Position numbers and translations under genes: made by a program. This document shows positions 240-37,052 of a stretch of DNA of 64,000 nt, in pieces; positions within the stretch are counted from its first letter, which is position 1, and every line of letters starts with the position of its first letter. The notes beneath the pieces were generated by a model. The model was given only the letters and a program-made list of their open reading frames with translations. It ran no database searches and was not told where the DNA came from. The DNA lies in the NCBI GenBank assembly GCA_047495785.1, contig JBLDXI010000001.1, positions 1,302,001-1,366,000 on the forward strand, read 5' to 3'. Source of the DNA: Lepidodermella squamata. Its lineage: Eukaryota; Animalia; Gastrotricha.

Positions 240-1082
240 CGAGAGCGCGCGAGGCGTATGCTGTTAGCACTGCTTGTTGGTAATTGATCGCAGCCCTTTG
301 AGCCAGCAGATAAGCAACTGTAGCACCCCAGATGCTGTCCAATCCTGTTGCGCTCGAAAGTATCTGAAGCTCAGTGTCCAGAATAACGAGAATGCTGCAT
401 TTTAAAAACTCAATGTCGTCGAAAACTGTTGACGCAATATGGGAAATAGCTAATGTGAAATTCTAACGAAATGTATGATACCATTTAATGATCGCTCGTC
501 AAAAGCTCGATAAGCGCGTAGGGATAGCGCTTCAGGTCGAGAAGCTAAATTCGACCGGATTCGTGCCACGGAACATATGTACGTTCGATACTCCGGGGCT
601 GCGAAGTAAATTTTCGTCAGTACATCGTAATGTCTGTTGAATACCTAGAAGGAGTTATTGAAGAATCCATCATCATCAACAATATTATAGTGATAACTCA
701 CGACATCATTCATCTTGACAGCCTCTCCCAGAGAAACGTAATCACTAGGGTTGTAGTTATTAGTCATATACCTGACCCTGGCAAACGATTCTGAAATAGC
801 CGTATCAGCCAAATCTGTCAATGCCTCGAATGCATCAAAATCGTCATTTGTATCTTGAAGAGTTTGAATCTCTTGGGCTGCGTTGGACAAAATTATGGAA
901 CTGCGCAAAATCCCGCAGATAATGACTACGGTTAGCGAGCACGCGAGTGCAATTAGAAACGGCTTGGCTTTGTTAGTCAGAACTAGCGACTTTGCCTCCA
1001 TCTCCACTTCCTTGAATGTATCGCCGGATGCCAAAGACAAGCCGGATTGTTGGCTGCCACTTCGACTTACAGCTCGAGACAT
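240..1082 (-). CDS. Membrane guanylate cyclase paralog 1, 5' exons only (gene runs off the window start)
   Basis: Exons align with paralogs 2 and 3 (SGDTFKEVEMEAK, TM1, FARVRYMTNNYNP, FDDIEF, WGATVAYLLAQRA); donor GT at 239. Confidence 0.85.
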
Positions 1083-2490
1083 TTTGTCGAAGAAAATCTT
1101 ACGGTTTAAAAGTACGTAAACCTATAAGTGTAGGGAACAACAATCACTGAAGCAACAAGTTTCAGAAGGCTCGAAAGGCCCAGGGTATTTTTCATCTAGA
1201 GAAGAAGTTTCTATTTATTTATTTAATGAGCCATTAATCCATAGTGAGTTGGAAAGCTCAGCTGTAAAAAGAAAGTAGTGATTAAGTTGATTGCAAAACT
1301 ATACAACAAGAAGGCGTGTCTTAGGACAGGTAGAAAACAAATAGGACAAAAGCATGCATGAAAAATCACATCAACAACATGAGACGGTTTCATCAATCGT
1401 TCGTTATAAAAATGTATAAAAAGGCGATTTCAGTTTTCGATAGCAGGTTTAGTGGTGAGCTCGGTAGCGGGCTCGGCAGTGCTTTTGCTTTGTTATTGGA
1501 TGAAATGTTCGCAGACTAACTGCCTGCACTGATCGGCGGTGGATGCTGCTCGGATCTCGTCTCGAAGGCTGTTCCAGAAGACCGCCCCATAATACGGTAG
1601 GCAGCGTTCCACTGTTCTCGATTTTATTTTCGGTGGTTGCAGGATGTTGGTCAAGCCATTTAAGGCTGATTGTTTTCAAGTCGGAGCCGTTGGTTCTCGT
1701 ACATTGGAGAAGGCAGTTAAAGCATCCGGATCTTCCCCATTCATGCATCGCCATCTCCAAGTGGCCAAGTGAACCTTGCGTTTTCCGTCTAAATCAAGCC
1801 AACGCAGACTTTGTCGCAGCGGTTTCGGGTCGCCGTTCGCTGGAGCGCGGCATGTGATCCATGATTCGAACAGCCTGGTCCTGGCGCTTTTTTCCAGTTT
1901 TTTCCAGCTTTGGTGGGGCTTTGTTCTCGAAACATCTCCTCAATCATGTGCAAATTGATAGAGATCGATTTTGAAAGAGATAATAACGCCGATCGGACAG
2001 CCGGAGCAATGAGATTGGCGCTTTAGTTTCGATGTTCAGATCGCTGGAACGCTCATATCTCGTCGCTTGTTTTCCGAAGATGTTACGACGAGGGAACTCA
2101 TTCCAAAAAATATTTATCATAGAGCCTATTAATGCAAAGGATTGGTACAGGAATAGATCAAAGATAAATGGGTAGAAGAAAGGCAGGCCGGGAACCGGGC
2201 AGTTTGATCTAAACAAATATCCTGGGGAATATTTAGACAGGGATTGAGAACTTAAGAACAGAGGTTGAAAGTTACCCGCAGCTCACCTAAGAAAGCATCT
2301 GTAGGTTGAAAGTAAGGGCAAGCACATTTAGGACACAATTGTGCGTGTGAACTGAAGCGAATGTGAATCTTACCTCATTGCAAATATACTAGCGAGAAGA
2401 AATATTATTTGTTATGCCGCGCTGCCGACGATGTCTCCCTAAATTCTTAATCTAGGAGCGAATGTATCTTCGCATATTCCTCATTTTAGA

Positions 2491-5184
2491 TCAGGTGCGC
2501 GAGACTTCTGTGAGCGTGTAATCAGTCGTGGCGCTGCAGAATAGTGACAGGAATGGAGAGCTGGTGACCTTGTTTCTCAGCCAATAAGTTGGCATACCGT
2601 CCTATCAAACATGAAGGGTTGGTTGTTATCATGGGGATATTGCTTGCGTCGTTAAATTACTCGGATTTAGGCTTGTTTGTTCAGTTACAACATGGCGGCA
2701 TGTACAGGGTCATTTGTTTTTGCCTCTTCTCTCGCGTGAAAAAAACTCCCTTCTACTTTTCACCCGTCACTTGTAACTGATGTCAACACGCCTAAATCCG
2801 AGTTATTCAACGACGCTATCAAATAGTTAATGGCCCTTGATTATGAAGACAACAAATCAAGCACTTACAGGCCACTCGTTTTTAGGGCGTTCCTGCAGTA
2901 TGAATCCGCCTAGTCGATTGAGTTCGCGATACGACGATAGGCTGACTTGAATTTTCTGTGGTTGCGAAGTCTGTTCCATGCGATTAGCTAATAAAATGTC
3001 ACGTTACATACAGAAAATTGTATGAAACCTGCAGAAATACCATATTGAACTGTGTTGCCGAATAGACAGTAGCGGAATGTTTTGAAGCCGACAATTCCAG
3101 CCATAACTGGGCCGCTGTTGATGCCGACTCGGATGCGTATCTTGTCCTTTCTCCCAGGCACCTTGATCATTCCGACTTCTTCAATCAAGACAAGAGCCAA
3201 CGAAGCTATTTCAATAGCATGACCCGTAATGCGATTAGGCACTCCACTTGCTACGACATACGCATCTCCTATCGTTTCCACTTTGTAACATTGGAAAGCA
3301 TTCGTTCGATTGTCAAAAGTGGAGTAAATTTGGTTGAGAAGGCCCAGCACGTCTTGAGCTCTCAATTTCGAACAGATCGACGTGAACCCAACAATGTCCG
3401 AGTAGAAAATCGTGACGTTATTGTAGTACTCTGGGCTAACTTGAACGCCCCTGTTCAACTGTTTGGCGATGCTTTTCGGTAGTAGACGGTAGATAGCCCG
3501 GCAAGAATCCATGTACCGCTCGACGCAAGAATCATAGCGACTGAGAAGCCTAGTGGCTTCTCTAGCAGTATGAACAATCCAAACAACGCTGAGCCATGGC
3601 AAGAAAATTCCAAATATAGCCAGTTTGATACCCTCTGCAAATAAAATTCAAGGAAATATTCGCGCAATCGAACAAGCTTCCGGAATAATGAGTTGTCACG
3701 ACGACGAGGCTTTTCATCGTCCCGTCACGCAAATTGCTCATTTGGAGACATAATTACAGATACCGGATTCATAATAATTGTTTTAGCGGGTTACCTGTGA
3801 TCACAGTGTTGTACGCAGAGTTTAGAGCGTCGTCGTATGAATCCAACATGACATTTTTGTAATATCGTGTAATTTTCTTCAATTGCTTTGTAACTTGAAG
3901 ACTGGCAATAGACTGCTCGTCTGCGATGAATGACTATTTTTAAAATGTACTCAAGCAGAAATAAGTTACATGTTTGCCCAAGTGATACTAGCAAGTAAGC
4001 TTTCGTGGCATTTGGAATCGCTTCCGATTGATCTATTAGTCCTTGTATGGCTGCAATCGCCTCGTCAGTTCCATCGCCAGCATTGTTCGGTAACAATAGA
4101 CTTGCTTTTTTTAGAAGCATAACGGCCAAGCTCAGCGAATCTTCCATTTGCAAAGAATCGTTTTTCCGATCAAATTTTGCAGCATTTGATCTCACTGTTT
4201 CAAAACAGGTTTAAAGAAAAGAATTAATGCAAAATGATTGAAGTGAGCGGGTAAATATGGCCTTCAGCCCGCGCTTGTGCTGCCTTATTTAAGCAAGCCT
4301 ATTCAAGCTTTAAGAACCCAGATATAGTTGAGTATAATGAATACCGAGGGCACGAGAGGCGTATGCCACCAAAACTGCTTGTTGGTAATTGATCGCAGCT
4401 CGTTGAGCCAGCAGATATGCAACTGTAGCGGCCCAGATGCTGTCTAATCCTTGTGAACTCGCCACTACTTGAAACGTTGTGTCCAGAACGACAAGAACGC
4501 CACATTTTAAAAACTCAATGTCGTCAAAAACTGTCAACGGCATGTTGACAATAGCAAAAATTAATTTCTAATAGAAATTTCCAATACCATTTAATGACCG
4601 CTCGTCATACGCTCGATAAGCGCGTAGGGACAGCGCTTCAGGTCGTGAGTTCAAATTCGACCTGATACGCGACACCGAACATGTGTAGGTTCGGTATTCC
4701 GGAGCCCTGAAGTAAAGTCTCGTCAGTACAGCATAATGCCTGTTGAATGCCTAAAAGGAAGGCCTAAGAATGAAAAATACAGAATAATATGGTGGTAACT
4801 TACGACGTCATTATTCTTGTATATCTCGCTAAGCGCAGAGTAGTCACTCGGGTTGTAATTATTCGTCATATACTTGACCCGCGCGAATGAAACTGACATA
4901 GACGTGTCGGCCAAATCTTTCAACGCCTCGAATGTATCGAAATCGTCATTGGTATATTGAAGAGTTTGAATATCTTGGGCTGCGTTGGATAAAATTATGG
5001 CACTGCGCAAAATTCCACAGATAATGACTACAGCTAGTGTGCACGAAAGTGCGATTAGCAGAGGCTTGGCTTTGTTAGTCAGAACCAGCGACTTCGCCTC
5101 CATTTCCACCTCCTTGAACGTATCGCCCGACGCCAACGACATGCCGGACTGTTGGCTGCCACTTCGACTAAGAGCGCGAGGCAT
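2491..5184 (-). CDS. Two-TM guanylate cyclase with NIT-like extracellular domain, paralog 2 (multi-exon)
   Basis: TM1 near the N-terminus, TM2 LAIFGIFLPWLSVVWIV, then cyclase motifs TIFYSDIVGFT, YKVETIGDAY, RVGINSGPV, RYCLFGNTV; exons splice in frame; the 3' end is uncertain (one more short exon is possible). Confidence 0.9.
2646..2816. mobile_element. MITE in the last intron of cyclase paralog 2
   Basis: 27-nt imperfect TIRs gcgtcgttaaattactcggatttaggc / gcctaaatccgagttattcaacgacgc; the matching intron in paralog 3 is only about 60 nt. Confidence 0.7.
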
Positions 5185-6074
5185 TTTTTCGAAGGAAATC
5201 TCACGTTTTCAAATATTGTAAGCCTAAACGTGTAAGGAATTAAACACCCGAGTATATGCAAGGAATTTGCGATTTAAACTGCGCATGTAAAAAGAATTAT
5301 CGATAAAATAGGTCCTACTGTAGTAAAGTGAGGTACATTCTTGATTGAAAATTGAGACAAGGGTCGGGAATGTTTACCGTTCATGCGAATACTAACTAGT
5401 TGTTTAGCATGCCAATTACACACAACTCTCGCGGAACACAACCCATTGAAAGCGACATCGAAATCTAAAATTGTGTAAAATCCAGTCACTCTTTCTTACC
5501 TGCATATTATGATCGCGCGCTCATAATTAGTTATTAGTACCGGCTCACACAGAACACGAACAACAGATTTTCACGGACGCAGCAGGCTAATTGATAACCG
5601 ATCAATATTCTTCTAGTAGGGAATAGGCTTATGCAACCATTTTTTTGATAACGATGACAGGTTCAGTCAGTTATGAGACGTAGATAGGTACACCGCGGCT
5701 CTCAGAAAAGTAGTAGAAAATGTGAGGTTGTTTTGTGAGGTGCAAGTCCAAATGACTAGCTTATGCCAATATTACGTATTGCCAATAGTATGATCAATAA
5801 ACCCCAGTATATCGCAAATTGTGGTATATGGTCACCCGAACCCCCCGAAACTTACCGGAGCAAGAGATGTCATTAAAGACGTACGTACGTAGACTGTACC
5901 TAGACCATGTTCAGGGGGGAAAACGTTCGAGCTGGAGGCCTTATTGTTACAGAGCTTACCTTGATGCCCATATTTATTGCCAGACATAATTCTTTGTTAT
6001 GCCGCGTCGTTGACGATGTCCCTCACGCCAGGCCTAATCTGAGTGCGAATCCGTCAATAATCCGTTGTTTTCCA

Positions 6075-8350
6075 TTAGATTCGTGAAACCTCGGTGAGAG
6101 TATAATCAACGCCGGCGCTGCTAAAAAGAGACAGGAAAGGAGAGCTGGTAGACCTGTTCCTTAGCCAATAAGTTGGCATACCATCCTATTGAAAGTTTAG
6201 TTGAGAATCTTGAGATGATGTGGGACTAAAAACAGATGAAATACTTACAGGCCACTCGTTTTTAGGCCGTTCCTGTAAAATAAATCCACCGAGGCGATTG
6301 AGTTCGCGAAACGACGACACGCTGACTTGAATTCTTTGAGGTTCTGACGTCTGCTCCATGCGATTAGCTAACAAAGTTTCGTGTAATACAGACATTTATA
6401 ATAAATCTGCAAGAAATACCGTATTGAACTGTGTTGCCGAATAGACAGTAACGGAATGTTTTGAAGCCGACAATGCCAGCCATAACAGGGCCGCTGTTGA
6501 TGCCGACTCGGATGCGTATCTTGTCCTTATTCCGAGGCACCTTAATCATTCCAACCTCCTCAATCAAAACAAGAGCCAACGAAGCGATTTCGATAGCATG
6601 GCTGGAGATGCGATTCGGCACTCCACTCGCGACGACATACGCGTCCCCTATCGTTTCCACCTTGTAACATTGGAAAGCATTAGTTCGATTGTCAAACGTC
6701 GAATAGATTTGGTTGAGGAGGCCAAGCACGTCTTGAGCTCTCAGTTTCGAACAGATCGACGTGAACCCAACTATGTCTGAGTAGAAAATCGTGACGTTGT
6801 TGTAGTACTCTGGACGGACCTGAACGCCTCTATTCAACTGTTTAGCGATGCTTTTCGGCAGAAGGCGATAGATGGCCCGGCATGAATCCATGTACCGCTC
6901 GACGCAAAAATCGTAGCGACTGAGGAGTCGTTTAGCCTCTCTGGCAGTATGAACGATCCAAACAACGCTGAGCCATGGCAAGACAACCCCGAATATCGCC
7001 AGTTTAATTCCCTCTGTGAAACATTTTTCAAGAGAAAGGTCATTAGGTTCAACTGACTTACCTGTTATCACGGTATTATAGGCCGAGATCAGAACATCAT
7101 CAAATGAATCCAACATGAAGCTTTTGTAATAGCGCGTAATTTTCTTCAACTGAGATGTTAGTTGAGCACCGAGTAGCGACTGCTCATCTGCAATGAAAAA
7201 CGATTTACCATGAAATGTTGGTAAAGTAGTAAAGCTGTATTACATGTTTGCCCTCGTGATACAAGCAAAAAAGCTTTCGTGGCATTCGGAATCGCTTCCG
7301 ATTGATCCATTAGTCCTCTAATTCCTGAAATTGCCTCGCGAGTACCAATATCAGAATTGCTCGGCAACAGAAGACTCGCTTTTTCCAGTAGCATAGCCGC
7401 CAAATTCAGCGAATCTTCCATTTGCAAAGCGTCAGTTTTCCGCTCAAAATTTGCAGCATTTGAATGCACTGTAACAATGAAAAAGTTAGGATATTGATGT
7501 TAGACAGATATTAAGCAGACCAAGAACACGAGAGGCGTAGGCCACCAAAACTGCATGTTGATAATTGATCGAAGCCCTTTGAGCAAGCAGATTCGCAACT
7601 GTGGCGCCCCAAATGCTATCTAGTCCTGTTCCGATCGATAGTATCTGAAGCTCCGTGTCTAGCATAAGAAGAACGCTGCATTTGAAAAACTCAATGTCGT
7701 CGAAAACTGTAAATAAACATATGTTTAAATGAGAATCAAAGTTAACTTTTATACCATTTAACGATCGCTCGTCATACGCTCGATAAGCGCTTAAGGAAAT
7801 TGCTTCAGTTCGTGAGGCCAAATTCGACCTGAGACGCGCGACCGAACAGTTGTACGTACGATATTCCGGGGCAGTGAAATAAATTTTCGTCAGAACATCG
7901 TAATGTTTGTTGAATACCTGAAAAAACTAGTTTAATGACCCAAAATTAGCCAATAAAATGAAACCTTACAACGTCATTCATTCGGACAGCCTCGCCAATA
8001 GATACGTAATCATTAGGGTTGTAGTTATTTGTCATATACCTGACCCGAGCGAACGATTCAGCCATGGTAGCATCTGCTAGATCTGTAATAGCCTCGATTG
8101 AATCGAAATCGTCATCGGCATCTTGTAGGACTTGAATATCCTGAACAGCCTTGGATAAAATTATGGCACTGCGCAAAATGCCGCACAGAATCACCACACT
8201 TAGCGAACAGGCGAGTGCAATTAGCAAAGGCTTGACTCTGTTATTCAAGACTAGCGTCTTCGCCTCCATTTCAACTTCTTTGAACGTATCGCCTGACGCG
8301 AAAGACGCGCCAGATCGTTCGCTAGCACTTCTGCTATAAGCCCGTGACAT
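6075..8350 (-). CDS. Two-TM guanylate cyclase with NIT-like extracellular domain, paralog 3 (multi-exon)
   Basis: Same exon structure and cyclase motifs as paralog 2; first intron 7918-7969 (52 nt); 3' end uncertain. Confidence 0.9.
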
Positions 8351-8551: not shown

Positions 8552-9979
8552 TTATTTTATTGAATGCGGAAACAAATCACCAAAGCTCAACAAATGTGAT
8601 AAATGAGGAGTGAGATTCATGCTGTCAATCGCCGTCTGCCGGTTCGACAGACCCCGCGGTAGTCTATTTAGAACCATCCGTCTTGAAATTGATTGAAGCG
8701 TCATCGGAAATCGTTGCCGGATGAGCTGTTCGAAATCGACGCTAGAAAACCTGATCGGCGAACTGAGAGGCAGCCGCGGAATTTCAGCGAGAGATTCGAT
8801 GAAAATATCGAAAATTGCCCCTCTCCGCCGGTAACTAGGCCATAATTGGCCGCAAATGTCTTCAGCTCGTTTGTTCCAAACATGCTTCAGGTGAATTGTT
8901 GATCGAATAACCTCGCAGTAAGTCGTCCTTGCCCCGGCTCGAAGGAGTGGAATAACAGCAAACGCGACCACTCGAGCAATTTCTTGAGTAGCAAATGGCA
9001 ATGGGAATTCAACAATCATCTCCATGTAACAGGCCATTAAGGCGGCTAAAAGCGGCGTAACTGGGGCATTGAGCGGTGGGTTGAAGTCAACTGAAAAATC
9101 AGCCGAGAAAAACGATTGCCGCGAGGCGATTTCAACTAGCCGAACGCCGGCTTCAGGGCTCAAAATCGCCATATAGACCAGGTAGTGCAGTAAAGCTCGA
9201 TTGACGTCGTCGTTATCGAACCACAGGGTGGTTTCATTCTTGCAATATTGATCCAAAAGCGAGATAACGCGACACGTATCAAGCGAATCGATTAGGCTCT
9301 GATCGCGGGAAATTTCTTCGCAAATCGTCATGCGGCGGATTTTTTGAAATTGAGAACACGAGTAAGTCAGAATTTTCGAAGATTCTTGCTGCCAAATACT
9401 AGTAAGAGGGCAAATTCCGTATTCGAAAATCAGAGTTTCAACTCCGCTTGAGAACGAATTTTCAATACAGAAATCGAGCAGGTTTCTCAATGAGCAGGAC
9501 GGGAAGGTTTTCGACGCCTCGCCTAGCACAAGTTGAAAATTCGAAATGTCCCTAATTAGGACACAAAAAAACGAAAGCAGTAGATCCAACGCGGAGAAAT
9601 GAGGGACGGCAGCTTGTGATGACCGCTCTTCGTTGATTATTCGGCCGAGTTTCCCAAGTTCATCCCTATCAATAAGGAAACTTTTAGCCAGGTAAAATCC
9701 GTCATTGATGTTGTAGATAGGCTGGCGAAATAGCAGCGTGTATTCATTGCCATGCTCGGGCCCTTCATGGCTGTCGAGCCGGTCGTCCCAACTTCGAGCT
9801 GAAGATAGCACAAAACGAAGGCTATCGGCTTGATTTGCGGTTGTAAGTTGGCTGTTGATGCGCCTCAAAGCTGAGCGGATGTCTCGCAAAAACTGCTGAG
9901 GCCTCGAGCCGGGAAAACACGTCGAGGCACAAATTAGGTCTTCATGGCTGCGCGAGTGCCTCAGCCGATCGTTTTGCAT
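8552..9979 (-). CDS. Intronless SOCS-box protein with a possible degenerate ankyrin-like segment
   Basis: C-terminal PMTLQSISRRMVLNRL...IDSMNLTPHLSHLL fits the BC-box/cullin-box pattern; VTPLLAAL...LLRAGA resembles an ankyrin repeat; first ATG at 9979. Confidence 0.7.
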   Translation of the reverse strand: MQNDRLRHSRSHEDLICASTCFPGSRPQQFLRDIRSALRRINSQLTTANQADSLRFVLSSARSWDDRLDSHEGPEHGNEYTLLFRQPIYNINDGFYLAKSFLIDRDELGKLGRIINEERSSQAAVPHFSALDLLLSFFCVLIRDISNFQLVLGEASKTFPSCSLRNLLDFCIENSFSSGVETLIFEYGICPLTSIWQQESSKILTYSCSQFQKIRRMTICEEISRDQSLIDSLDTCRVISLLDQYCKNETTLWFDNDDVNRALLHYLVYMAILSPEAGVRLVEIASRQSFFSADFSVDFNPPLNAPVTPLLAALMACYMEMIVEFPLPFATQEIARVVAFAVIPLLRAGARTTYCEVIRSTIHLKHVWNKRAEDICGQLWPSYRRRGAIFDIFIESLAEIPRLPLSSPIRFSSVDFEQLIRQRFPMTLQSISRRMVLNRLPRGLSNRQTAIDSMNLTPHLSHLLSFGDLFPHSIK

Positions 9980-10317
9980 CAATTTTTGCGTAGAATTATC
10001 ACAAATCAACTACTACTCTATAATATGTATTTCAAATAAAATTATCTCGGTGTTCAAATAGTATTTGCTTTTGGCGGAAAGATCTCAGCAGATGTTTCGA
10101 AAATTACGTCGTTTGGGTACCGTAATATGTTACAGGCGGATAGGATTTTGAAAGGGCTTTCTTTTCCTTTATGGACCTTTGCCTCCATAGAAACATTTGA
10201 ATCACAGAGTAAACAGAAGATAATGATAAAAATTCGACGTTGCTTACTGCCTATTACACTTAGTTTTTGCGATAGGAACTACAATAACATTTTGATATTA
10301 ATTTCTAACCTAAGAAA

Positions 10318-19717: not shown

Positions 19718-20726
19718 TCAGTGATCTTTGAATTCCAACCCACTATCTGCCATTTTCTCTCGAACAAAATCGTCGACTCGCTTTTCCAAGTCTTGCGTGA
19801 AGTAGTTTTTCCATCCTCCGACAACTCCTTAATTGGTGGGATTAATTGAAGCATTAATTGGTGGGATTCATCTCACCTTTTCTAATGAAAGACTCCGACG
19901 AGTGCCAAACGTGATTGTCCGCGTTGAAAATTCCATTGTAATTTTTCTTCATAGCCTCAAAACTCGTGGCTTCGTAAATTTTCGCAAAAGTCTCGTCCGG
20001 TAAGTCATCTTTTCCGATGAATCTCGCAATTTTCCGTATCGCAGCCATTCGATCGTGTTTCATCTCCTCGTAAGAAATCAGCAATAGATTGTTCTCGTCA
20101 GATATTTTAGCTTGGGCGAAGCTTAGCAGGTTCTTTTCCCACGGTCCCCATTGAAACTTGCCTTGAAGGAACATGTCGACAAACTGCTCGAATGTCCCTT
20201 TATAACCTTGAACGATCATGGCTCGGGCATGATGGAAGTTCGAAACAATCACATCTTTGACATTTCGATACACGTGGATCACTTTCCCGGTCAATATATT
20301 TTCTGGCAGTAAACCAAGCGGCATGTGTGTCTTGAAGATCCGAGGCGATTCCATAGCCGACAGGCTCTCTAATTTTTCCGGTTTTTCATGCCGCGGCCGA
20401 GGAATCTCGAACCACTCGAAGTGCGGGATACGATCGTCAAGGTAAACTGAAGTATCAAAATTCTGCGTTAATAGGTACCAAACGATATATTCTGCCCACG
20501 TTGTGCCTGATTTCGGGAAGCTCGAGATCCAAACGTCGCTCGGCCTGCACTCGAAAGACCGCATGCGATCGATTGATGCAGCCATTGAGGGTAGCAAGGT
20601 GTAGCCGTCGACTTGAGTGATGGGTAGTCCGAGTTCTTTGTCGACTTTATCCCATTGTTCGCCAAATGCTAGCTTGCGAGCTTGCATGATTTGCTCATCT
20701 GTCCAAAGTGGTTCTAAATTGGTCAT
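19718..20726 (-). CDS. Cytosolic sulfotransferase A
   Basis: FPKSGTTW PSB loop, FKTH, YRNVKDVIVS, RKG/GVVGGWK split by one short intron. Confidence 0.92.
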
Positions 20727-21457
20727 TTTTCGAAGAATATATCTAAGTGGCAAAAATAAATCGAGATGGTCTCGTATAATAAAGAGATCCTATTTTGAAT
20801 AAAATTCGGAAATTCTGCACCGCGGAACCCGAATGATTCTACGCAGACTGATTTTATGTTCCCTAAATTCGAATGAATTTCTTTTGAATTTTTGAAATCA
20901 CGCTAATATATCATATAGGATTTGTGAGAAAGTTCAAGTTTAAAGCAAATATGTTCAAAAATTAGTCCGTAAAAAAGAGGTCAAAGTACAGAAGCGTGAA
21001 AAACCTAAATCTGTTACGTTCTAATGAGCATCCAAAAATTGAATACGTGCTCCAAGAGACAAGCAAGAGAGCGATGAACTTCGTTCGAGCTCACCTTATG
21101 GTTTTTTTGTGTTATACTTTTCCACAGACACAATTTGTTAATTGCCGAGACAATGTTATTCACACAGGTGAAAAAGCCGAGGCGTGGTTAATCGAAATTG
21201 CTGAGCAATTCAATTTCGAGGTTTCAATTCGACTTGAAATTTGAGCCTTTTTATTTTTTATTTTAGTGTTCAATCTTTCATACATATAACCTTTAGAGCT
21301 GTCACACATAAAATATACTTATGTGTGACAAAATTTTATAGGTTATTTTGTCATAAATAAATATGAATGAGGAACACCTCGTTATCGCCAGAATCTATCT
21401 ATTAGTGACTTGACAAGGTAGATTTTGAAGTATTGAGATAAAAACAATTGGCTTCAA

Positions 21458-21529
21458 AGGCCCAGGCGGGAATTGAACCCGCGATCTTCTGTTTACGAGA
21501 CAGACGCTCTACCACTAAGCTACTGAGCC
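21458..21529 (-). tRNA. trnT: tRNA-Thr(CGT)
   Basis: Cloverleaf GGCTCAG...CTGGGCCT, anticodon arm TCTGT-CTCGTAA-ACAGA, GGTTCAATTC B-box, downstream T-run. Confidence 0.93.
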
Positions 21530-21927
21530 AAGACGTCGAAAATCGCGGCCGTTTCACCAACATGGATACTTCATATCATGGAAACAAAAGAAAACGGCAG
21601 CGTGTCCCACACAAATACATACCGCTTTTGCTTATCCGCGCAATCAGAGTCAGTAATTGTAGTTATCTTCCTTTGTTCTCTGAATTTATTTTCGTGGAGA
21701 GTGAAAATAATCCAATTAACTAGAATTAACCCCAAACACGATAAAGATCAGGCCCGCAAATTATAATCAGTTAAAATCGGAAGATGCTGTACTTTGCTCT
21801 CGGAAATTATAATGAAAATGTCCATATTCAGCCAAGTCAAGAAAAAATCGTCGAAAATCGTCAAGTCAAAAATATAGTCGTCATAGTAAACATTTTTTCG
21901 CATTAAATCACCTCGAATCAAAGGGGC

Positions 21928-22939
21928 TCAGTGATCGTTAAATTCCAGCCCGCTATCAGCCATTTTTTCCAGAACAAAATCGTCAACACGCTTTTCCAGG
22001 TCTGGCGAGAAGTAGTTTTTCCAGCCACCAACAACTCCTAATAAAATTACCCAGCATAATTGAGCATTTATTGGTGGAATTCATCTCACCTTTTCTAATG
22101 AAAGACTCCGATGGGTGCCATACGTGATTTTCCGGGTTGAAAAGTCCATTGTAATTTTTTTTCATAGCTTCAAAGCTGGTGGCTTCAAAAATTTTCGCGA
22201 AAATCTCTTCCGGTAAGTCATCCTTTCCGATGAATTTCGCAATTTTACGTATCGCAGCCATTCGATCCTTTTTCATCTCCTCGTAAGAAATTAGCAATAG
22301 ATTGTTCTCGCCAGATTGTTTAGCCTGTGCAAAGCTTAGCAGGTTCTTTTCCCACGGTCCCCATTGAAACTTGCCTCGAATGAACATGTCGACAAACTGC
22401 TCGAATGTCCCCTGATAGCCCTGAACAATCATCGCCCTAGCATGGTGAAAATTCGATACAATCAAGTCTTTCAAATTGCGATAAACGTGTATGACTTTGC
22501 CGGTGAAAACATCCGCCGGAAGCAAATTAACTGGCATGTGCGTTTTAAACATTCTGGGCGGCTCATTAGCTGCCAGACTCGCCAACTCCCTCCGAGGGCC
22601 GAAATCAGGCCTGGGAAACTCATAACACTCGAAATGTGGAATGCGATCATCAATCGACGCTGTTGTTTCGAAATCCTGCGTTAGCAGATACCAAACGATA
22701 TATTCCGTCCAAGTTGTGCCCGATTTAGGGAAGCTGGATATCCACACATCGCTCGATCTGCATTCGAATGGCCTTATTCGATCTAATACTGCGTCTATTG
22801 GTCGCATGAGGGTGAAGCCTTCGGCCTCAAATATCGGTAGTCCTAGCTCTGGGTCGATTTTATCCAATAGGTCGCCCATGGCCATATTTCGAAATCCCGT
22901 TACTTGCTCTTGTGTCCAAAGTTGTTTTAAATCGCTCAT
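21928..22939 (-). CDS. Cytosolic sulfotransferase B
   Basis: Same motifs and intron position as sulfotransferase A. Confidence 0.92.
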
Positions 22940-24456
22940 TTTCGATCAATGGATGCACCAGTAAATGAAGTAAGTAGGTACGGTCAAGTTAAAAAATTGA
23001 AATGAGGTGTGGAAAGAAATGCTGAATGCTGACAATCTTTAAAGCTGCTTAATTATAAAGCTTTCAGAAAATTACGACTAGCCTGTATGTATATTTCACG
23101 GTGAAACGCTGTCAGGCTCATATGTTTCTATCGGCAATATTGAAAAAGTGTGTTTTTTACAGCAAGCAAACAAACTATGGAGGAATCGTCTATTCCTAAA
23201 CACTAAGAAGTATTCCTCATATCCATGAAAAAACGCAATAACCACCTCAGGCTTTCTAATATTATTAACGTTACTTGGTTAAGCGCAAGACACGTGATAA
23301 TTTGAAACCCCAGGTCACGGTTTTGGCGACAACAATAGATAGGGCTTGATCATGTGAATATTCAAGGGAAGGTAGAGAAGCTCAATCAAAGAAAAATGGC
23401 CGTTAATTACACTCCTAGTTTCGGACATTTTTCAAAAACTGTCTGCTCGCGCTTTTGGGGAAACCGCAATTTGAACAACATACATGCATACCTACATACC
23501 GACAAATTTTAATTTCGGGTAAACTTTCGATTTTCTAAATGCATTGCATTGGAAACTTTGCTGCTAAAAAAACACCATTAACGCGCCGGAACCATCGTAT
23601 AATTTTCGTATTTTCAACAAAAACATCGGAAAATTCAACGTTTTACTTCATCTCAGTTTCCGATGGGTTAAGATATTATTTCAAATTTTCACAAATTCAC
23701 TTTATATTATTTCAGATGTTCGATGAAATGAGACACACGTTATATTGCACTTATTCATAAATTATCGGCCGAGCCCTGGAAGATGACCCGCGCCACGGCC
23801 GCGAGTAACCACGGTTCTTCACAAAGCCTAAGCTCCCGACCTCGACCGTCACCTTGGCCTCGTTTCATATCAAGCCGGGCGCAGTGGTGCATCTTCAACA
23901 TTTTTACATCGTAATTGTGTATCTAATTTTTCCCGAGATGGAGAAGCTTCTTTATTTGTTTTGCTTCTTGTATCTTTTGCACCGTGCTCACGGCTCACGG
24001 CTCACGGCACCATACTCCGTCCGCTTTCTGCGTGAAGAATTGAAGCTGAAAGTTTTTAAGAGCATTCAAATTTCTAAGCGATCGCTTTAATTTCACGCGG
24101 GAACCCTATATACAGGGTGGCCAAAAATCCGCAATGTTCGGTTTTTCAACATATTTCCTCCTCCATGTCCAATACACATACCTACACCACGTTTGCATAA
24201 TATCCGCGCGATCAGTCAGTAATTAAGCTATTTTCCTTTTTTCTCGGAATGTATTGCCGTGGAAAGTAAAAATAGTCCAAATAAAAACAAAACATGGAAA
24301 ATATCAGGCTCGCAAATTAGAATAAGATGCTGTACTTAGCTCTCAGAAATTGTAATGGAAATTTCCATTTTCAGCCAAGTCAAGAAAAAATAGTAAAAAA
24401 ATGTCGTGGTCACAGTTAACATTTTTTCGCATTAAATCACCTCGAATCAAAAGGGT

Positions 24457-25482
24457 TCAACAGTCGTTGAATTCCAGCCCGCTATCTGCCATTTTCTCTC
24501 CAGCAAATTCGTCGACCCGCTTTTCCAAGTCTGGTGAGAAGTAGTTTTTCCAGTCTCCGACAACTCCTAATGAAATTTGCATAACATATTGCTTAATGAA
24601 TTAAAAATTGTAAACTCAAGCGATAATCCGACCTTTTCTTAAGAATGACTCCGATGGATGCCAAACAACGCCTTTCGAGCTGAATGTTCCATTGTAGTCT
24701 TTCTTCAAAGCCTCAAAACTCGTGGCTTCGTAAATTTTAGCAAAAATCTCGTCCGATAAGTCATCCTTTCCGATGAATTTTGCAATTTTACGAATCGCAG
24801 CCATTCGATCTTGCTTCATCTCCTCGTAACAAATCAGCAATAGATTGTTCTCGCCAGATTGTTTAGCCCGAACAAAGCTTAGCAGGTTTTTATCCCAGGG
24901 TGCCCATTGAAACTTGCCTCGAAGGAACATATCGACAAACTGCTCAAATTTCCCCTGATAGCCCTGCACAATATTCGCCCTGGCGGCATGAAAATTCGAA
25001 ACAATAACGTCTTTCAAATTGCGATACACGTGGATGACTTTGCCGGTGAAAACATCCCTGGGAAGTAAGTTAACTGGCATGTGGGTTTTGAACATTCTAG
25101 GCGGATCTTTTTTAACCAGACTTGCCAAATCCCTCTTCGAGCCGAAATCAGGCCTGGGAAATTCATAGAACTCGAAATGCGGTATGCGATCATCAACCGA
25201 CGTTGCTGCTTCGAAATCCTGGGTTAGCAGATACCAAACGATATATTCCGTCCAAGTTATCCCCGATTTAGGAAAGCCTGATATCCACACATCGCTCGAT
25301 CTGCATTTGAATGACCTTATTCGATCTAACACTGCGTCCATTGGTCGTATGAGGGTGAAGCCTTCGGCCTCGAATATCGGTAGCCCCAGCTCTGGGTCGA
25401 TTTCATCCAATATATCTCCCATGTTCAAATTTCGAAATACAGTTACTTGCTCTTGTGTCCAAAGCTGCTTCAAATCGCTCAT
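24457..25482 (-). CDS. Cytosolic sulfotransferase C
   Basis: Paralog of B; PSB loop variant GFPKSGITW. Confidence 0.9.
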
Positions 25483-26673
25483 TTTTGAATTGATACGCGC
25501 TAAAATAAGTTATGCAGGGTCAAATTATAAAATTAAAATGAGGTATGGAAAAAGATGTTACAGTTGTTTATTTATAAAGCTTAGAGATAAAAGCGGTTAG
25601 CATCAATGTATATTTTACCCTGGCTAACACGGTGAAGCGTTGCCAGGCTCACATCGTTGACTTGGCTATAGGGAAAAATTGGGGTTTTTTTTACAGCAGG
25701 CAATAAACAAACCACGGAGGAATAGGCTATTCCTACTTACATTCCTCCATGAAAAAAAGCGCAATAACCACCCCAGGCTTAAAGTGCGTGGTTAAGCGCA
25801 GGTGATAAATTGAAGCAATTAACATTATGACACGATCAGAGATCGCCCGCTAGCGTGAAAAAGGGTGTACGCCGTGGGCGCCAGATAGTCAGCTGATTCA
25901 TCAGCGGCTTGGAGGCCAAGTACACAAAATAATCGATTCTTTGTTTGAGGGTTCCGAATTCCGAAAAAATTGATGGTTCCAGATAGGTGACATCACATCG
26001 AACACGCTGGTTATTTTACAAAATTTTAGAAGCAATATGAACCACTGAAATTAAAGGAATTGAATTTCGTTGATGCAATAAAAATTCATTTACACCACTT
26101 GTGGAATCGAAATTGAAGCAGTTTTTTAGTGGCCCGCGTACCCCAGACCGAGCTCTACAATTTGATACTTGGAGCGAGCTGGGATGAATTTTTATCGAAT
26201 TTCAGGAAATTTTTGAACATCGAACGTGATTTCATCCATTATAAAAGAATATGAACTTAGTGGATGATTCAATTCAGAACCTTTGTTGACAGCACGTGCG
26301 CGGCATGCACATGTTGTGGTTGGAAACCAAACCCGAATCTCAAGAGAACTGTTGTCTATAGTCTATATGTGTAACAGATAGGACAAAACGGACATAAAAT
26401 TTGAAATCATCTCAAAATTTAAATAATAATCGTAGTAAATCTTAACTGCATGTAGCGTAAAACCGCATAAAATTAAGAGCTGAACAAAAATATGGCCGGA
26501 CCGGCCGAGATGTGGAACCGGAATGTTGAGCGACAGCAATAGGTTGAGCGGCATGAGGCATGAACACATGAAAAGTAATAATGTTGGGCCTTCTGTTCAT
26601 TTTAACACGGATAAAAACCACAAAATGCGAAGGAATAGAAAAATGAGGAAGGAGCAAAAAATCATTCATCGGA

Positions 26674-26745
26674 AGGCCCAGGCGGGAATTGAACCCGCGA
26701 TCTTCTGTTTACGAGACAGACGCTCTACCACTAAGCTACTGAGCC
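26674..26745 (-). tRNA. trnT: tRNA-Thr(CGT)
   Basis: Identical to the copy at 21458-21529. Confidence 0.93.
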
Positions 26746-27110
26746 AAGACGTCGACAATCGCGGCCGTTTCACCAACATGGATACTTCATTTCCTGAAAA
26801 CAAAAGAAAACGGCAGCGTGTCCCACACAAATACATACCGCTTTTGCATATCCGCGCGATCAGAGCCAGTAATTTTAGTTATCTTTCTTTCATTCTTTGT
26901 TCTTTGTTCTTTGTTCTTTGTTTCTTTGTTCCCGGAATTTATTGCCGTGGAAAAAGAAAATAATCCAATTAACTAGAATTAACCCCAAACACGATAAGGA
27001 TCAGGCTCGCTAATTAGAAAAAGTTAAATTATTATTCCAATTCAAGATGAATAGTAGAAAATTTCGTGGTTACAGTTAACAACGATTGCCTCGCATTAAG
27101 TCACCTCGAA

Positions 27111-28136
27111 TCAAAAGGGCTCAGCAGTCGTTAAATTCCAGCCCGCTGCCATTTTCTCTCGAGCAAAATCGTCGACTCGCTTTTCCAAGTCTGGCGTGAA
27201 GTAATTTTTCCAGTCTCCGACAACTCCTAACAAAATTTACATAATGTGTAATAGGTGCAGATTGCACATTCAAGAGATATTCCGACCTTTTCTAATGAAA
27301 GACTCTGATGGATGCCAAATAAAGTTTTTCGAGCTGAATGTTCCATTGTAGTCTTTCTTCATAGCCTCAAAACTCGTGGCTTCGTAAATTTTAGCAAAAA
27401 TCTCGTCCGATAAGTCATCCTTTCCGATGAATGTTGCGATTTTTCGTATCGCGGCCATTCGATCCTGTTTCATCTCCTCGTAACAAATCAGCAACAGGTT
27501 GCTCTCGCCAGATTGTTTAGCCTGTACAAAGCTGAGCAGGTTTTTATCCCAGGGTGCCCATTGAAACTTGCCTCGAAGAAACATGTCAACAAATTGCTCG
27601 AATGTCCCTTGATATCCCTGAACAATCGTCGCCCTAGCATGGTGAAAATTCGATACAATCAAGTCTTTTAAATTGCGATACACGTGGATGACTTTGCCGG
27701 TGAAAACATCCCTGGGAAGTAAGCTAACTGGCATGTGCGTTTTGAACATTCGAGGCGGCTCTCTAGCTGCCAGACTTGCCAAATCCCTCTTCGAGCCGAA
27801 ATCAGGCCTGGGAAACTCATAACACTCGAAATGCGGTATGCGATCATCAATGGAAGCCGTTGTTTCGAAATCCTGGGTTAGCAGATACCATACGATATAT
27901 TCCGTCCAAGTGGTGCCCGATTTAGGGAAGCTGGATATCCACACATCGCTCGATCTGCATTCGAATGACTTTATTCGATCCAATACTGCGTCTATTGGGC
28001 GTATGAGGGTGAAGCCTTCGGCCTCAAATATTGGTAGTCCTAGCTCTGGGTCGATCTTATCCAATAGGTCGCCCATGGCCATATTTCGAAATCCCGTTAA
28101 TTCCTCTTGCGTCCAAAGCTGCTTTAAATCGCTCAT
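27111..28136 (-). CDS. Cytosolic sulfotransferase D (4-nt deletion alters the last residues)
   Basis: All core motifs present; exon 2 has gcagcggg where paralog C has gcagatagcggg. Confidence 0.88.
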
Positions 28137-28635: not shown

Positions 28636-28707
28636 AGGCCCAGGCGGGAATTGAACCCGCGATCTTCTGTTTACGAGACAGACGCTCTACCACTAAGCTA
28701 CTGAGCC
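28636..28707 (-). tRNA. trnT: tRNA-Thr(CGT)
   Basis: Identical to the other two copies; different upstream flank. Confidence 0.93.
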
Positions 28708-34249: not shown

Positions 34250-36184
34250 ACGCGAAAATAATAATTAAAATAATAATTAAAAAAAGACAAAAAAATAATT
34301 ATACGAAGCCAAAATTTCAACCTCAAATTCTTGTGTAATTTTCTCTGTCTCAAAGATGCTGATATGACACATGCTTGCCTTAAAAAAAATACATGTCCCA
34401 CTTCATGTCGATATTATATATCGTGCTTTTTTGTTCGCGAATCGCCCGATCCTTATTTTATCTCTCGCTTTAATTGCGTGACTTGAGGTTTATCATCATC
34501 ATCGAAAATTCAAAAAGCGTTGTCCTTACAGTCGCTATAGGTTGAACAACGATAATAATACATTCGAACGAATAGTAATAAACGGCGCCGAAAATTACGA
34601 ACAACAACTATGTCGGCGGCGTAAAATTTTTATCAATTGAGCATATCACATGTTATTCGTGTGAGAACCGGTGAGTGCTCCTTCTCTCTTCTTACTCACT
34701 GTTTCTGTCTTAACCACCTCTATATTAATACATTATTTTATTGTAAAAAATAAGTATACCTATTAATCAAGTTACTAACCTTGAATCATGATATAGATGT
34801 TGTAGTAGTCATCAAGTTTTGGGTCGCTTTTTTCTATCCGCCTTTCGCCCTCTCATGTGCGCTTCGTTTAGTTACCCGCCGCCGATGATTTTTTTGGTTC
34901 TCATGCTTGGAAAGGCGCTGAAACGGCTCGGCGCCTTTCACTCGTCATCGCCTTGCGCTGTCTGGATGATAAACGCACAACGCTCTGTTTGTTGATGATA
35001 TCTGCTGTTATTGTATTAACACGCATTATAAAAATTATATCATTATTACATGTTCACTGTTTTACTTTGATAATATATCATCATGATTCGACTTATTTAT
35101 TATCGCTATACACTATTCTACATGTGTAAAAACTACAATTCAATGTCCAAAGGCGAAAATGATCAATCACTTTTATATATAGAGGAAATTGGTTACAATG
35201 AAAAAAAAACTTTCGTGTTGAATACCGGGGTCGTTTTTTTCCAAGTTTCCAAAAGTGACCAATCAAACCTTGAGCTTGCGTCAGACAACGAGTAATCGGA
35301 TTCCAGAGTTTTTCCGATAAAATTAATTAATTTCAAAGATAGAATTTCAGACATCAGCTAATCAGCTAAGGCATTTAAATTGGCGAATGTGGATGTGGAA
35401 AATGACAGGAACATCCCAGGACATTCGGACAATAATTTGGTGGAATAATTCCAACTTTAAAGCGAAAGAAAAAGAAAAAGCATTTTTAGCTGAGTTGTCG
35501 AAAGGTCAAATTCCTGGTAAAATGAAAACAGATATTTTCCAAATTACACGAAAATTTCCAATATTATCATTATCATTATCAAAATAGATTTATTTTCTAC
35601 CAATTTTATGCAGGCGTCCCAGATTTATTTTCTTGAGCATTTCCTGGCATTTCCTCTCTGTTGGATGACCATGCCATGTCAGCGAGGTGATCGATCGGCT
35701 ATCATCGAATAATAGGTCACATGGGTAATTTTGATTCGCAACCTTAACTATTAACATTTCAAGTAAAAAAAGATAGAAAAGAAACAGAGAGAAGAGGTTA
35801 CATTGTACTATTAAATTTCAGCTAAATATTTGTTTTAGTTGAAAAAAAAGATTAGGAAAATGGCAAGGTGAAAAAAGGTGCGACGCCGAGTTTTTCCAAG
35901 ATTTCCCAACAATTTTCCAGAGCTTGTCTACTTTCCACATTCTGCTAAATATTTGGAGTTGAACGATTTGTTATTCCATTGAGATTTTCATAATTGACCT
36001 TGTGGACGCTCGACGCCGCGTGCCCGTTATTCGATTATCGGGCACGTGCTGGTAAAATCAAAATAACATCTATTTTAAAACGGGCTGGAAAATAATAAAC
36101 AGGTCGAAAGCGAGCTCGCGATTTCAATCGTGTTAGGACACGTGGAGCGGCGTTGCACAACACGGAAAATCCGTCGGCCGGTGG

Positions 36185-36194
36185 TATATTTAAG
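36185..36194 (+). promoter_or_regulatory. TATA-like box upstream of gene A (conserved at 43260-43269)
   Basis: ggtggTATATTTAAg about 90 nt upstream of the ATG in both copies. Confidence 0.55.
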
Positions 36195-36275
36195 GGCATA
36201 CCGAAGACTGGTTAAACATCAACCAGCCTCTTCTCATATTTTCTCATCAGTTTATTCTCTCATTTCAATCAAAAA

Positions 36276-36921
36276 ATGCGTCTTGTTTTGGTTGCAGCTG
36301 TCGTTGCTCTTTTCTGCATCGGTGAGCAGGAGAATCAATATCAATTCATCTAGTTTCAACTTTGATTTTTTTTCAGCCGCCACCTCAGCGAACATCGGCA
36401 AACGCGGTCGGGGCAACAATGTCTCCGCCTCGGTGAACAAGAAGTCGGCCTCCGCCTCAGCTGGTGATAACCGTGGTCGTCGTGGATTCATCGGCCACCG
36501 TGGTCGCCGCGGCAACTTCGCCTCTGCCTCGGTCAACCGCCGCTCCGCTTCGGCTTCAGCCGGCAACAACCGCGGCCGTCGTGGCCACTTCATCGGCCGC
36601 CGTCGCGGTGGCAACTACGCCTCGGCCTCTGTCAACAAGAACTCCGCCTCCGCCTCAGCTGGTGACAACCGTGGCCGCCGTGGCCATTTCATCGGCCGCC
36701 GTGGCTCCCGCTCGTCCGCGTCTGGCTCCTTCCGCGGCCGTCGCCATGGACGCGGTTTCTATGGCCGCCGTCACGGTGGTCGCTTCGGTCGTCACGGTCG
36801 CCGTGGATTCTACGGCCGTGGTCACTATGGTTACGGTCGCCGTCATGGCCGCGGTTTCTTCAGCGGCTCGTACTCGTCCGGCGACTTCCATGGCCGTCGT
36901 CACCATGCTTTCTGGAATTAA
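36276..36921 (+). CDS. Secreted Arg/Gly/His-rich repetitive protein A, copy 1
   Basis: Exon 1 36276-36321 encodes signal peptide MRLVLVAAVVALFCI; 55-nt intron; exon 2 has 3 SASVN..SASASAG.NRGRRG.FIG repeats and a G/R/H/F/Y tail; strong codon bias. Confidence 0.88.
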
Positions 36922-37052
36922 AAGCCACCTCAAGAACTTGTATCAAATTGCGATAAAGATTATTTATTCATCGAAATTTGATGAAAAAGAAATGCAAATT
37001 ATTCTTCAATTATTCTTTAATAATTATAGATTTTGTTTCGATTTGATTGAAG

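Follow-up and report, generated by a model that had tools for sequence, protein, structure and literature searches.

The closest described counterparts of the genes reported here are the NIT-domain guanylyl cyclases (NIT-GCs) of invertebrates, the layout of which has been described by Moroz et al. 2020 (PMC7400543) and Jokura et al. 2023 (10.1101/2023.08.02.551600). Animal NIT-GCs, such as those of Trichoplax and Platynereis (NIT-GC1/2), possess a transmembrane (TM) helix, a helical ectodomain of ~280-300 aa, a second TM helix, a short helix and a cyclase, lack a kinase-homology or H-NOX domain, carry the Glu/Cys pair typical of guanylyl cyclases (GCs), and have undergone lineage-specific multigene expansions, and all of these features are shared by the genes under study, as the earlier note on this DNA had proposed for the layout. 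To our knowledge, animals have no known non-haem receptors of the NO/nitrite type other than NIT-GCs, the ligand chemistry of which has yet to be settled.

The window, i.e., the entire 64,000-nucleotide stretch of a Lepidodermella squamata contig that was analysed, carries on its minus strand two intact eight-exon genes (copies A and B), which encode 634 aa each, exhibit canonical GT-AG splicing and identical exon lengths, and are paralogues arranged head-to-tail. The earlier note described a tandem triplet of cyclases, which holds for the two complete genes, while the third (copy C) is represented by exons 1-3 only, its cyclase lying past the window start. Local expansion of the receptor family was correctly recognized, and the strings quoted in the earlier note (ITDLADATMAESFARVRYM, VRMND, VARLRSNL, AYRAY and AQRASINYQHA) are all present. 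Joined spliced models of the window and locus sequences were used for the alignments, hhalign comparisons, HMMs, tree and dN/dS estimates. The gene models are as follows:

6075..8350, minus strand: copy A, complete 8-exon gene, 634 aa; introns all GT-AG and 48-60 nt long, CDS of 1905 nt without a stop
8350-7970, 7917-7755, 7706-7521, 7468-7244, 7187-7062, 7013-6420, 6367-6249, 6185-6075, minus strand: exons of copy A
2491..5184, minus strand: copy B, complete 8-exon gene, 634 aa; exon lengths as in copy A
5184-4804, 4750-4588, 4530-4345, 4194-3970, 3920-3795, 3634-3041, 2987-2869, 2601-2491, minus strand: exons of copy B
240..1082, minus strand: copy C, represented by its first three exons alone (1082-702, 644-482, 425-240), with an unbroken reading frame; remainder beyond the window start

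These receptor genes are under strong purifying selection. Copies A and B are separated by a dS of 0.74 with an overall dN/dS of 0.146, the ratio being 0.23 for the ectodomain, 0.035 for TM2 plus linker and 0.064 for the cyclase, and exons 1-3 of copy C compared with A and B yield values of 0.13-0.16. The nematode gcy chemoreceptors, which form tandem arrays, are single-pass proteins that combine an ANF-receptor-type ectodomain with a kinase-homology domain; tandem expansion and a fast ectodomain next to a constrained cyclase (0.23 versus 0.06 here) are common to both systems, whereas the single pass, the ANF-receptor-type ectodomain and the kinase-homology domain are all absent here. That the copies are instead pseudogenes, i.e., duplicates of a receptor cyclase in decay, would fit their non-canonical catalytic residues, and a search of sequencing runs returned one DNA entry and no RNA run; yet the 1905-nt frames are intact, every splice site is conserved, and the same substitutions have become fixed in distant relatives that stem from other samples. 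This reading, which we regard as exceedingly improbable, is rejected because dN/dS is 0.15 at a dS of 0.74.

The encoded protein begins with a cytosolic N-tail and TM1; the ectodomain and TM2 come next, and a ~45-aa linker connects TM2 to the class III cyclase. The arrangement put forward in the earlier note, i.e., TM, helical ectodomain, TM, short coil and cyclase, is borne out, although the ectodomain measures ~295 rather than ~270 aa, because hydropathy places TM1 at residues 41-59 and TM2 at residues 363-381. The following segments of copy A were delineated:

8156..8230, minus strand: TM1, residues 41-65 (hydropathy score 2.6 over 19 residues)
7063..8155, minus strand: ectodomain, residues 66-360, exons 1-5 (hhalign against NIT-GC ectodomains; invariant residues, sequons)
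6946..7062, minus strand: TM2 region, residues 361-383 (hydropathy)

Guanylate_cyc (PF00211) is the sole Pfam match (8.3e-43 for copy A and 2e-42 for copy B), in agreement with the claim that kinase-homology and H-NOX domains are lacking. Pfam detected no kinase-homology domain (Pkinase) between TM and cyclase, as present in natriuretic-peptide/retinal-type receptor GCs, and the gap between TM2 and the cyclase amounts to only ~45 aa; likewise, it detected neither H-NOX (PF07700) nor HNOBA, which together characterize soluble guanylyl cyclase, and two TM helices are present. What was found is the NIT-GC arrangement, in which a TM-flanked extracellular domain is followed directly by a C-terminal cyclase without a kinase-homology domain. 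The residues after TM2 number 253 here and 252 in the Pfam-positive NIT-GC P0017, and the overall TM-ectodomain-TM-cyclase spacing is nearly identical.

The homology of the ectodomain is less readily apparent. Comparison with Pfam NIT (PF08376), along the lines suggested in the earlier note, returned no match at E<=10 when the ectodomain was searched exon by exon and in pieces of up to 215 aa, while the positive controls P0017 and P0127 scored 2e-33 and 3e-17, respectively. The designation ‘NIT-like’, to which Pfam is blind, is nevertheless upheld by profile-profile comparison: hhalign of the joined ectodomains of six family members and ten NIT-GCs scored 30.9 in global mode (P 8e-6) and 38.6 in local mode (P 1e-4), against 5.6+-3.7 and 18.7+-2.5, respectively, for a column-block-shuffled null (z about 7-8), and reference-only rows (alignment A6 versus A4) gave a P of 1.2e-4 with Prob 55%. 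The family HMM placed five of the ten NIT-GC ectodomains within the top six of 2020 sequences (2010 being decoys), while the reverse search, with the NIT-GC HMM against family sequences, performed no better than decoys. Similarity is restricted to the first half and the start of helix 5; the first helical bundle and the W..V.Y helix carry the signal and are detectably homologous to their NIT-GC counterparts, and the first 120 ectodomain residues alone gave a P of 0.15. The strongest similarity maps to the following segment:

7521..7706, minus strand: copy A exon 3, helices with the strongest NIT-GC similarity (FDDIEFFKC...GLDSIWGATVANLL), then AQRASINYQHAVLVAYASRVL (hhalign P 1.2e-4; P0127 and P0128 align with the family HMM at this segment)

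The second half of the ectodomain, i.e., the second bundle, exhibits no detectable NIT-GC similarity and is not alignable. The profile comparisons support the ectodomain as a probable remote homologue of NIT-GC ectodomains, with the similarity demonstrated for the first half of the sensor. The NIT-GC profile in turn matches the NIT domain of NasR (PDB 4AKK) at 7.7e-7, so that the link to NasR and other bacterial NIT sensors (PF08376), which are likewise all-helical with about eight helices, is an indirect one; family profiles searched against PDB chains gave no direct match, and retention of the nitrate-binding Arg pair could not be demonstrated here.

In the ectodomain of copy A, Cys residues 151 and 191 are invariant, a pair that the NIT-GCs compared do not possess, and a conserved N-x-T sequon is located at residue 305. 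The ectodomain is predicted to be all-helical with about eight helices. The AlphaFold/Foldseek comparison proposed in the earlier note produced helical AlphaFold2 models of two homologous pieces of one metagenome relative (H2-48 and H53-79 in one, four helices in the other), but Foldseek and VIA matched these two partial models to generic helical bundles only. In a language-model comparison, the first 128 ectodomain residues have the TorS, 4HB_MCP, TarH and CHASE3 sensors as neighbours, with NIT being absent.

Such neighbours, the missing Pfam NIT match and the unalignable second half would suit an ectodomain that is not NIT-derived, i.e., an unrelated or independently acquired sensor of the four-helix-bundle type on a GC of another lineage, its similarity to NIT-GCs being convergent. 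Against such an origin, the profile-profile match is not only significant but also colinear and located at corresponding positions between the TM helices, family halves scored only 9.2 and 8.6 (under the null) against the wrong NIT halves, the overall spacing is that of a NIT-GC, and the animal relatives collected include no other type of two-TM, kinase-less GC with a helical ectodomain.

Phylogenetic evidence bears on the same question. In word-index searches the close relatives comprised only four metagenome ORFs (50-58% identity), followed by generic GCs, and a full-length annotated relative suitable for folding was not found. A HMMER search of 1.84 billion representatives with an exon-1 profile identified only three real matches, all fragments (P0004-P0006); its top matches, P0001-P0003, are translated satellite repeats that share ‘ESSFSRVRF’ and were dismissed as spurious. 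The word index cannot cope with the divergence among NIT-GC ectodomains either, a search with that of P0052 retrieving only six matches. A mixed-fragment MAFFT alignment around the 390-aa L002 ORF was misaligned and left out of the results. In the cyclase-domain tree, the family forms a long branch that falls outside the NIT-GC clade as sampled, which is compatible with a non-NIT origin; however, a tree constrained to unite the family with this clade is 6.6 lnL worse with a p-AU of 0.0525. As regards the phylogeny called for in the earlier note, the unconstrained tree does not nest the family within the NIT-GC clade, and the AU test does not reject a common clade. Taken with the ectodomain evidence, a non-NIT origin is improbable. 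We assign a probability of approximately 0.72 to the reading that the copies belong to a lineage-specific branch of the invertebrate NIT-type receptor guanylyl cyclases that has diverged strongly, being two-pass receptors with a helical sensor and a cyclase. We regard the family as a diverged offshoot of an established receptor type and not as a new kind.

Within the first half of the sensor, the counterpart of the first NIT motif could be located:

8030..8071, minus strand: copy A counterpart of NIT motif 1, ATMAESFARVRYMT (HH alignment EsfARvkY versus ERdmTalY)

Here, copy A retains the canonical Glu but has Ser at the position of the canonical Arg, and a family-invariant Arg (R102) is located three residues further on in the same helix. 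The earlier reading of this E-R motif as ES is accurate for copy A; copy B has V-S, and the relatives have E-G or E-A. Its reading of the second motif as QH is unsupported: this region is not confidently alignable, and the canonical Arg is kept (ASR/LTR/IAR) in a low-confidence gapped HH alignment and lost in ungapped alignments. Similarly, AYRAY aligns with the NIT ‘HR’ motif and not with the position to which it had been assigned. The sensor thus differs from those of animal NIT-GCs in being invisible to Pfam NIT, in its displaced first conserved Arg and in its unrecognizable second bundle.

The cyclase domain is located as follows:

6078..6819, minus strand: copy A class III cyclase, residues 426-634, exons 6-8 (PF00211, 8.3e-43; residue table)
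2494..3440, minus strand: copy B cyclase domain (Pfam; catalytic residue set as in copy A)

The key residues of copy A are D440, E480, D484, C550, Q557 and N560-R561, with EWPDG at the position of KGKG. All six family members possess the metal-binding Asp pair (D440 and D484), the guanine-specifying, GC-type Glu and Cys (E480 and C550) and the transition-state Arg. The canonical transition-state Asn is represented by Gln in the window and by Leu in the relatives, while a family-invariant Asn is found at +3 from the lost residue, adjoining the transition-state Arg. The phosphate-binding Lys of KGKG is absent from all six members, the loop reading EWPDG or equivalent, and the Asp of FGD is replaced in each. 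Among 215 GC domains collected, 175 exhibit N..SR, and [Q/L]..NR occurs in this family only. The lack of the canonical Asn and KGKG Lys, together with the long branch outside the sampled clade, sets this cyclase apart from those of animal NIT-GCs.

On account of these replacements, the domain could be non-catalytic or act only as a partner, producing no cGMP as a homodimer and serving either as a regulatory or half-site subunit alongside a complete cyclase or in signalling without catalysis. Soluble GC alpha/beta and adenylyl cyclase C1/C2 are heterodimeric cyclases with split active sites, and the family resembles them in departing from canonical residues, those of the Asn-Arg pair included; it differs in that only the Asn and Lys are missing, a single chain retaining the metal half together with most of the partner half. 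The two metal Asp, the Glu, the Cys and the transition-state Arg are kept everywhere over branches of ~1 change per site, and the retention of both site halves in every member would be unexpected if one half or neither were used. The cyclase dN/dS of 0.064 points in the same direction, and the invariant Asn beside the Arg may substitute for the transition-state Asn that was lost. A non-catalytic role, which is compatible with NIT-GC ancestry and competes solely with the view of the family as active GCs, is a possibility that carries appreciable weight, although we somewhat doubt it; judged by its residues, the cyclase is somewhat more probably catalytically competent.

By analogy with other receptor cyclases, the receptor would act as a dimer in which ligand binding at the outer sensor shifts TM2 and the signalling helix, and this shift would in turn change cyclase output, the product presumably being cGMP because of the Glu/Cys specificity pair. 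The suggestion of the earlier note that the family senses something other than nitrate or nitrite is conjectural. It is also conceivable, although rather unlikely as a joint proposition, that the NIT sensor has been re-tooled towards a ligand that is neither nitrate, nitrite nor NO, with the binding Arg moved by one or two helical turns and the second bundle rebuilt, and that cGMP is still made by means of the moved Asn (ANR) with the KGKG Lys being dispensable, such that these proteins would constitute lineage-restricted chemoreceptors.

A branch in which the scaffold is under strong selection while the canonical Arg and active-site Asn have been moved or lost represents a natural experiment, and the family can reveal which residues are important to sensing and which to catalysis. 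Furthermore, Pfam-based censuses of NIT-GCs overlook whole expanded subfamilies.

The receptor guanylyl cyclase (GC) genes in the window are arranged head to tail, with spacings of 0.9 and 1.4 kb, and comprise two complete copies, A and B, and a third, C, which is cut off by the window start.

Receptor GC array and neighbouring genes in the window
8350-6075, minus strand: copy A, complete gene model, 634 aa
5184-2491, minus strand: copy B, complete gene model, 634 aa
1082-702, 644-482 and 425-240, minus strand: copy C, exons 1-3, frame intact
8552-10009, minus strand: uninterrupted ORF of 485 aa directly upstream of copy A, no Pfam match
21458-21529, 26674-26745 and 28636-28707, minus strand: three tRNA-Thr(CGU) genes, identical Rfam scores

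Exon lengths are identical in copies A and B (381, 163, 186, 225, 126, 594, 119 and 111 nt), the introns of copy A are of the GT-AG type and 48-60 nt long, and the window sequence is eukaryotic, with short GT-AG introns and a G+C content of ~43%. No exon 4 of copy C occurs in the 239 bases that remain up to the window edge, so that the tandem triplet of cyclases described in the earlier note holds as a count of genes, yet only two cyclase domains lie within the window. At least five single-exon ORFs for cytosolic-type sulfotransferases (PF00685, E 1e-44 to 1e-55) were also found at 19854-28136 and 52351-53232, four in a minus-strand tandem series and one further on, on the plus strand. The tRNA-Thr(CGU) genes of identical score are interleaved with the sulfotransferase copies, which suggests a duplicated unit carrying both. 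A Sushi domain occurs near the array, gene content being that of an animal with small introns, and G+C content peaks at 36000-38000 (0.57 vs ~0.42). A search of sequencing runs located the stretch in one DNA run and in no RNA run.

By hydropathy, TM1 spans residues 41-59 and TM2 residues 363-381, with an ectodomain of ~295 aa between them and a linker of ~45 aa (…AIYRLLPKSIAKQL…) leading from TM2 to the cyclase domain. Guanylate_cyc (E 8e-43 and 2e-42) is the sole Pfam domain, and kinase, H-NOX and HNOBA domains gave no Pfam match in the window genes, in agreement with the kinase-less, H-NOX-less two-TM layout previously proposed. In the family, i.e., copies A and B plus four metagenome homologues, two ectodomain cysteines (C151 and C191) are invariant and an N-x-T sequon is conserved at N305, features that would fit an extracellular placement. 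AlphaFold2 models of two unspliced pieces of a metagenome relative are helical (mean pLDDT ~70), the first with helices 2-48 and 53-79 followed by a loop-rich, poorly modelled stretch, and the second with four helices. As the two pieces were folded separately, we infer, rather than observe, a total of ~8 helices, counting that entering TM2, which is the number expected of two four-helix bundles. Fold searches with these two partial models returned generic helical bundles only.

The NIT-like nature ascribed to this ectodomain went unrecognized by Pfam NIT, which had no match at E<=10 in any exon or unspliced piece up to 215 aa, with bona fide NIT-domain GCs (NIT-GCs) of animals detected in the same run at 2e-33 and 3e-17. 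When six joined family ectodomains were compared with ten Pfam-positive NIT-GC ectodomains in hhalign, the global score was 30.9 (P 8e-6, Prob 65%), against a null of 5.6+-3.7 (maximum 20.9) from 60 column-block shuffles of the NIT alignment; the local score was 38.6 (P 1e-4), against 18.7+-2.5 (maximum 26.1) in the shuffles. The alignment is colinear and starts just past TM1, its similarity being concentrated in the first ectodomain half (24.5 vs null 13.6+-1.3) and where the following helix begins; comparisons of mismatched halves scored below the null, and profile comparison detected no similarity to NIT-GCs in the second half past 'W..V.Y'. A second hhalign, with an alignment of referenced pieces only (P 1.2e-4), pairs 'wdD..FYeC....D...Q.I..S.GLd.iW...VsY' with 'eieFYs..i..fidWly.aI..S..g..W..lVaYqll'. 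With 2010 decoys among 2020 ranked sequences, the family HMM put five of the ten NIT-GC ectodomains in the first six places; in the reverse test, the NIT-GC HMM did not rank family sequences above decoys, and the first 120 ectodomain residues alone gave an hhalign P of 0.15. The NIT-GC profile matches NasR (4AKK) at 7.7e-7. Based on these sequence comparisons, the sensor probably (at roughly 80-85%) descended from an NIT-GC ectodomain and diverged past family-model recognition.

Where the alignment is well supported, NIT motif 1, 'lQ.ERdmTalYlS', lies opposite 'l..EsfARvkYlt' of the family, confirming its earlier reading as 'ES': the Glu is retained (Val in copy B), and the Arg position is occupied by Ser, Gly or Ala. 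Three residues further along, at the NIT Thr/Ser position, stands R102, an Arg that is invariant and would therefore be roughly on the same helix face. Motif 2, which the earlier note read as 'QH', falls in an unalignable region where this is one of several registers; ungapped ones give A-V or Q-H, while the HH alignment, with seven inserted residues, sets 'ASR/LTR/IAR' opposite 'ER' at low confidence. The 'QH' reading is thus not confirmed, and in place of a loss of both arginines the comparison shows the first displaced and gives no confident alignment for the second.

Searching 1.84 billion representatives with an exon-1 profile gave only three fragments as real matches. The top three matches, P0001-P0003, were rejected as spurious: they are public protein entries translated from satellite DNA, long 'proteins' built of ~64-aa repeats (…ESSFSRVRFVFLVQGNDWSNVGKL…) that resemble the profile solely via 'ES.ARV.Y'-like words, their E-value of 1e-63 being produced by repetition. 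The contigs of the three fragments yielded four homologues from two metagenome samples.

Full or near-full homologues on metagenome contigs
L002: homologue
L003, 3020-5134: gene 1
L004, 4054-6118: gene 2
L005: gene 1

These homologues (633-652 aa) share the TM spacing of the window copies, possess fewer introns and are likewise tandemly duplicated (L003 3020-7910; L004 1-1400 and 4054-6118; L005 1-1858 and 4503-5060). Ankyrin-repeat, EF-hand and large Peptidase_M4_C genes adjoin them. Word-index searches of 5.8 billion proteins with a relative's 396-aa ORF and the window's own 261-aa ORF found no further close relatives, E-values falling from 1e-62..1e-68 directly to 1e-41 (generic GCs), and the family is thus narrow and essentially undescribed at the sequence level.

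Copies A and B differ by a dS of 0.74, with a dN/dS of 0.146 overall, 0.23 in the ectodomain, 0.035 in TM2 plus linker and 0.064 in the cyclase; the duplicates are old and constrained, and the combination of this dS with low dN/dS rules out that they are pseudogenes. A tree of cyclase domains, built from 41 rows and 239 columns, recovers the family as a single clade (100/100) on a long branch that joins between soluble and membrane GCs, outside the NIT-GC clade. Constraining it with the NIT-GCs is 6.6 lnL worse (p-AU 0.0525), which does not reject a common clade, and the long branch probably affects this placement.

At the active site, all six members retain both metal-binding Asp residues, the GTP-specifying Glu and Cys, and the transition-state Arg. 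The transition-state Asn is replaced in all six, by Gln in the window copies and by Leu in the relatives, and none of them has the 'FGD' Asp or the 'KGKG' Lys (EWPDG here); in each, an Asn directly precedes the Arg ('ANR' for 'ASR'). N..SR is present in 175 of the 215 GC domains collected, among which [Q/L]..NR was found solely in the family. Loss of the transition-state Asn in class III cyclases strongly lowers kcat, activity not necessarily being abolished. That the protein serves as an obligate partner subunit, or as a receptor without catalytic activity, is, the two taken together, an appreciable possibility, if short of even odds. Since Asn loss need not abolish activity and the remaining residues of both site halves are invariant over branch lengths of ~1 change per site, we lean slightly towards a working, non-canonical GC. 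Departures from the canonical transition-state Asn or Arg (S..K, N..S and N..L) also occur in several Pfam-positive NIT-GCs (P0020, P0052 and P0062), and non-canonical active sites are thus common across the wider class. Two Schistosoma soluble-GC-like proteins, P0021 and P0023, are likewise without the Asn-Arg pair and have a 'MEQTSSPQRIQVSVKAFENLSK' stretch in common with 'MEQTSEPQRIQVSVSSFRELNR' of the window; they fall apart from the family in the tree, so that the resemblance may reflect convergence or a long-branch effect.

NIT-GCs carry NIT between two TMs and a C-terminal cyclase, display lineage-specific expansions and possess two conserved arginines (Moroz et al. 2020, PMC7400543). 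NIT-GCs of this layout are also described by Jokura et al. 2023 (10.1101/2023.08.02.551600). The family exhibits the same domain layout, although it falls outside the Pfam NIT definition and differs from the class in its sensor arginines and active site. It is predicted to work like the NIT-GC class, of which it is a variant and not a separate kind.
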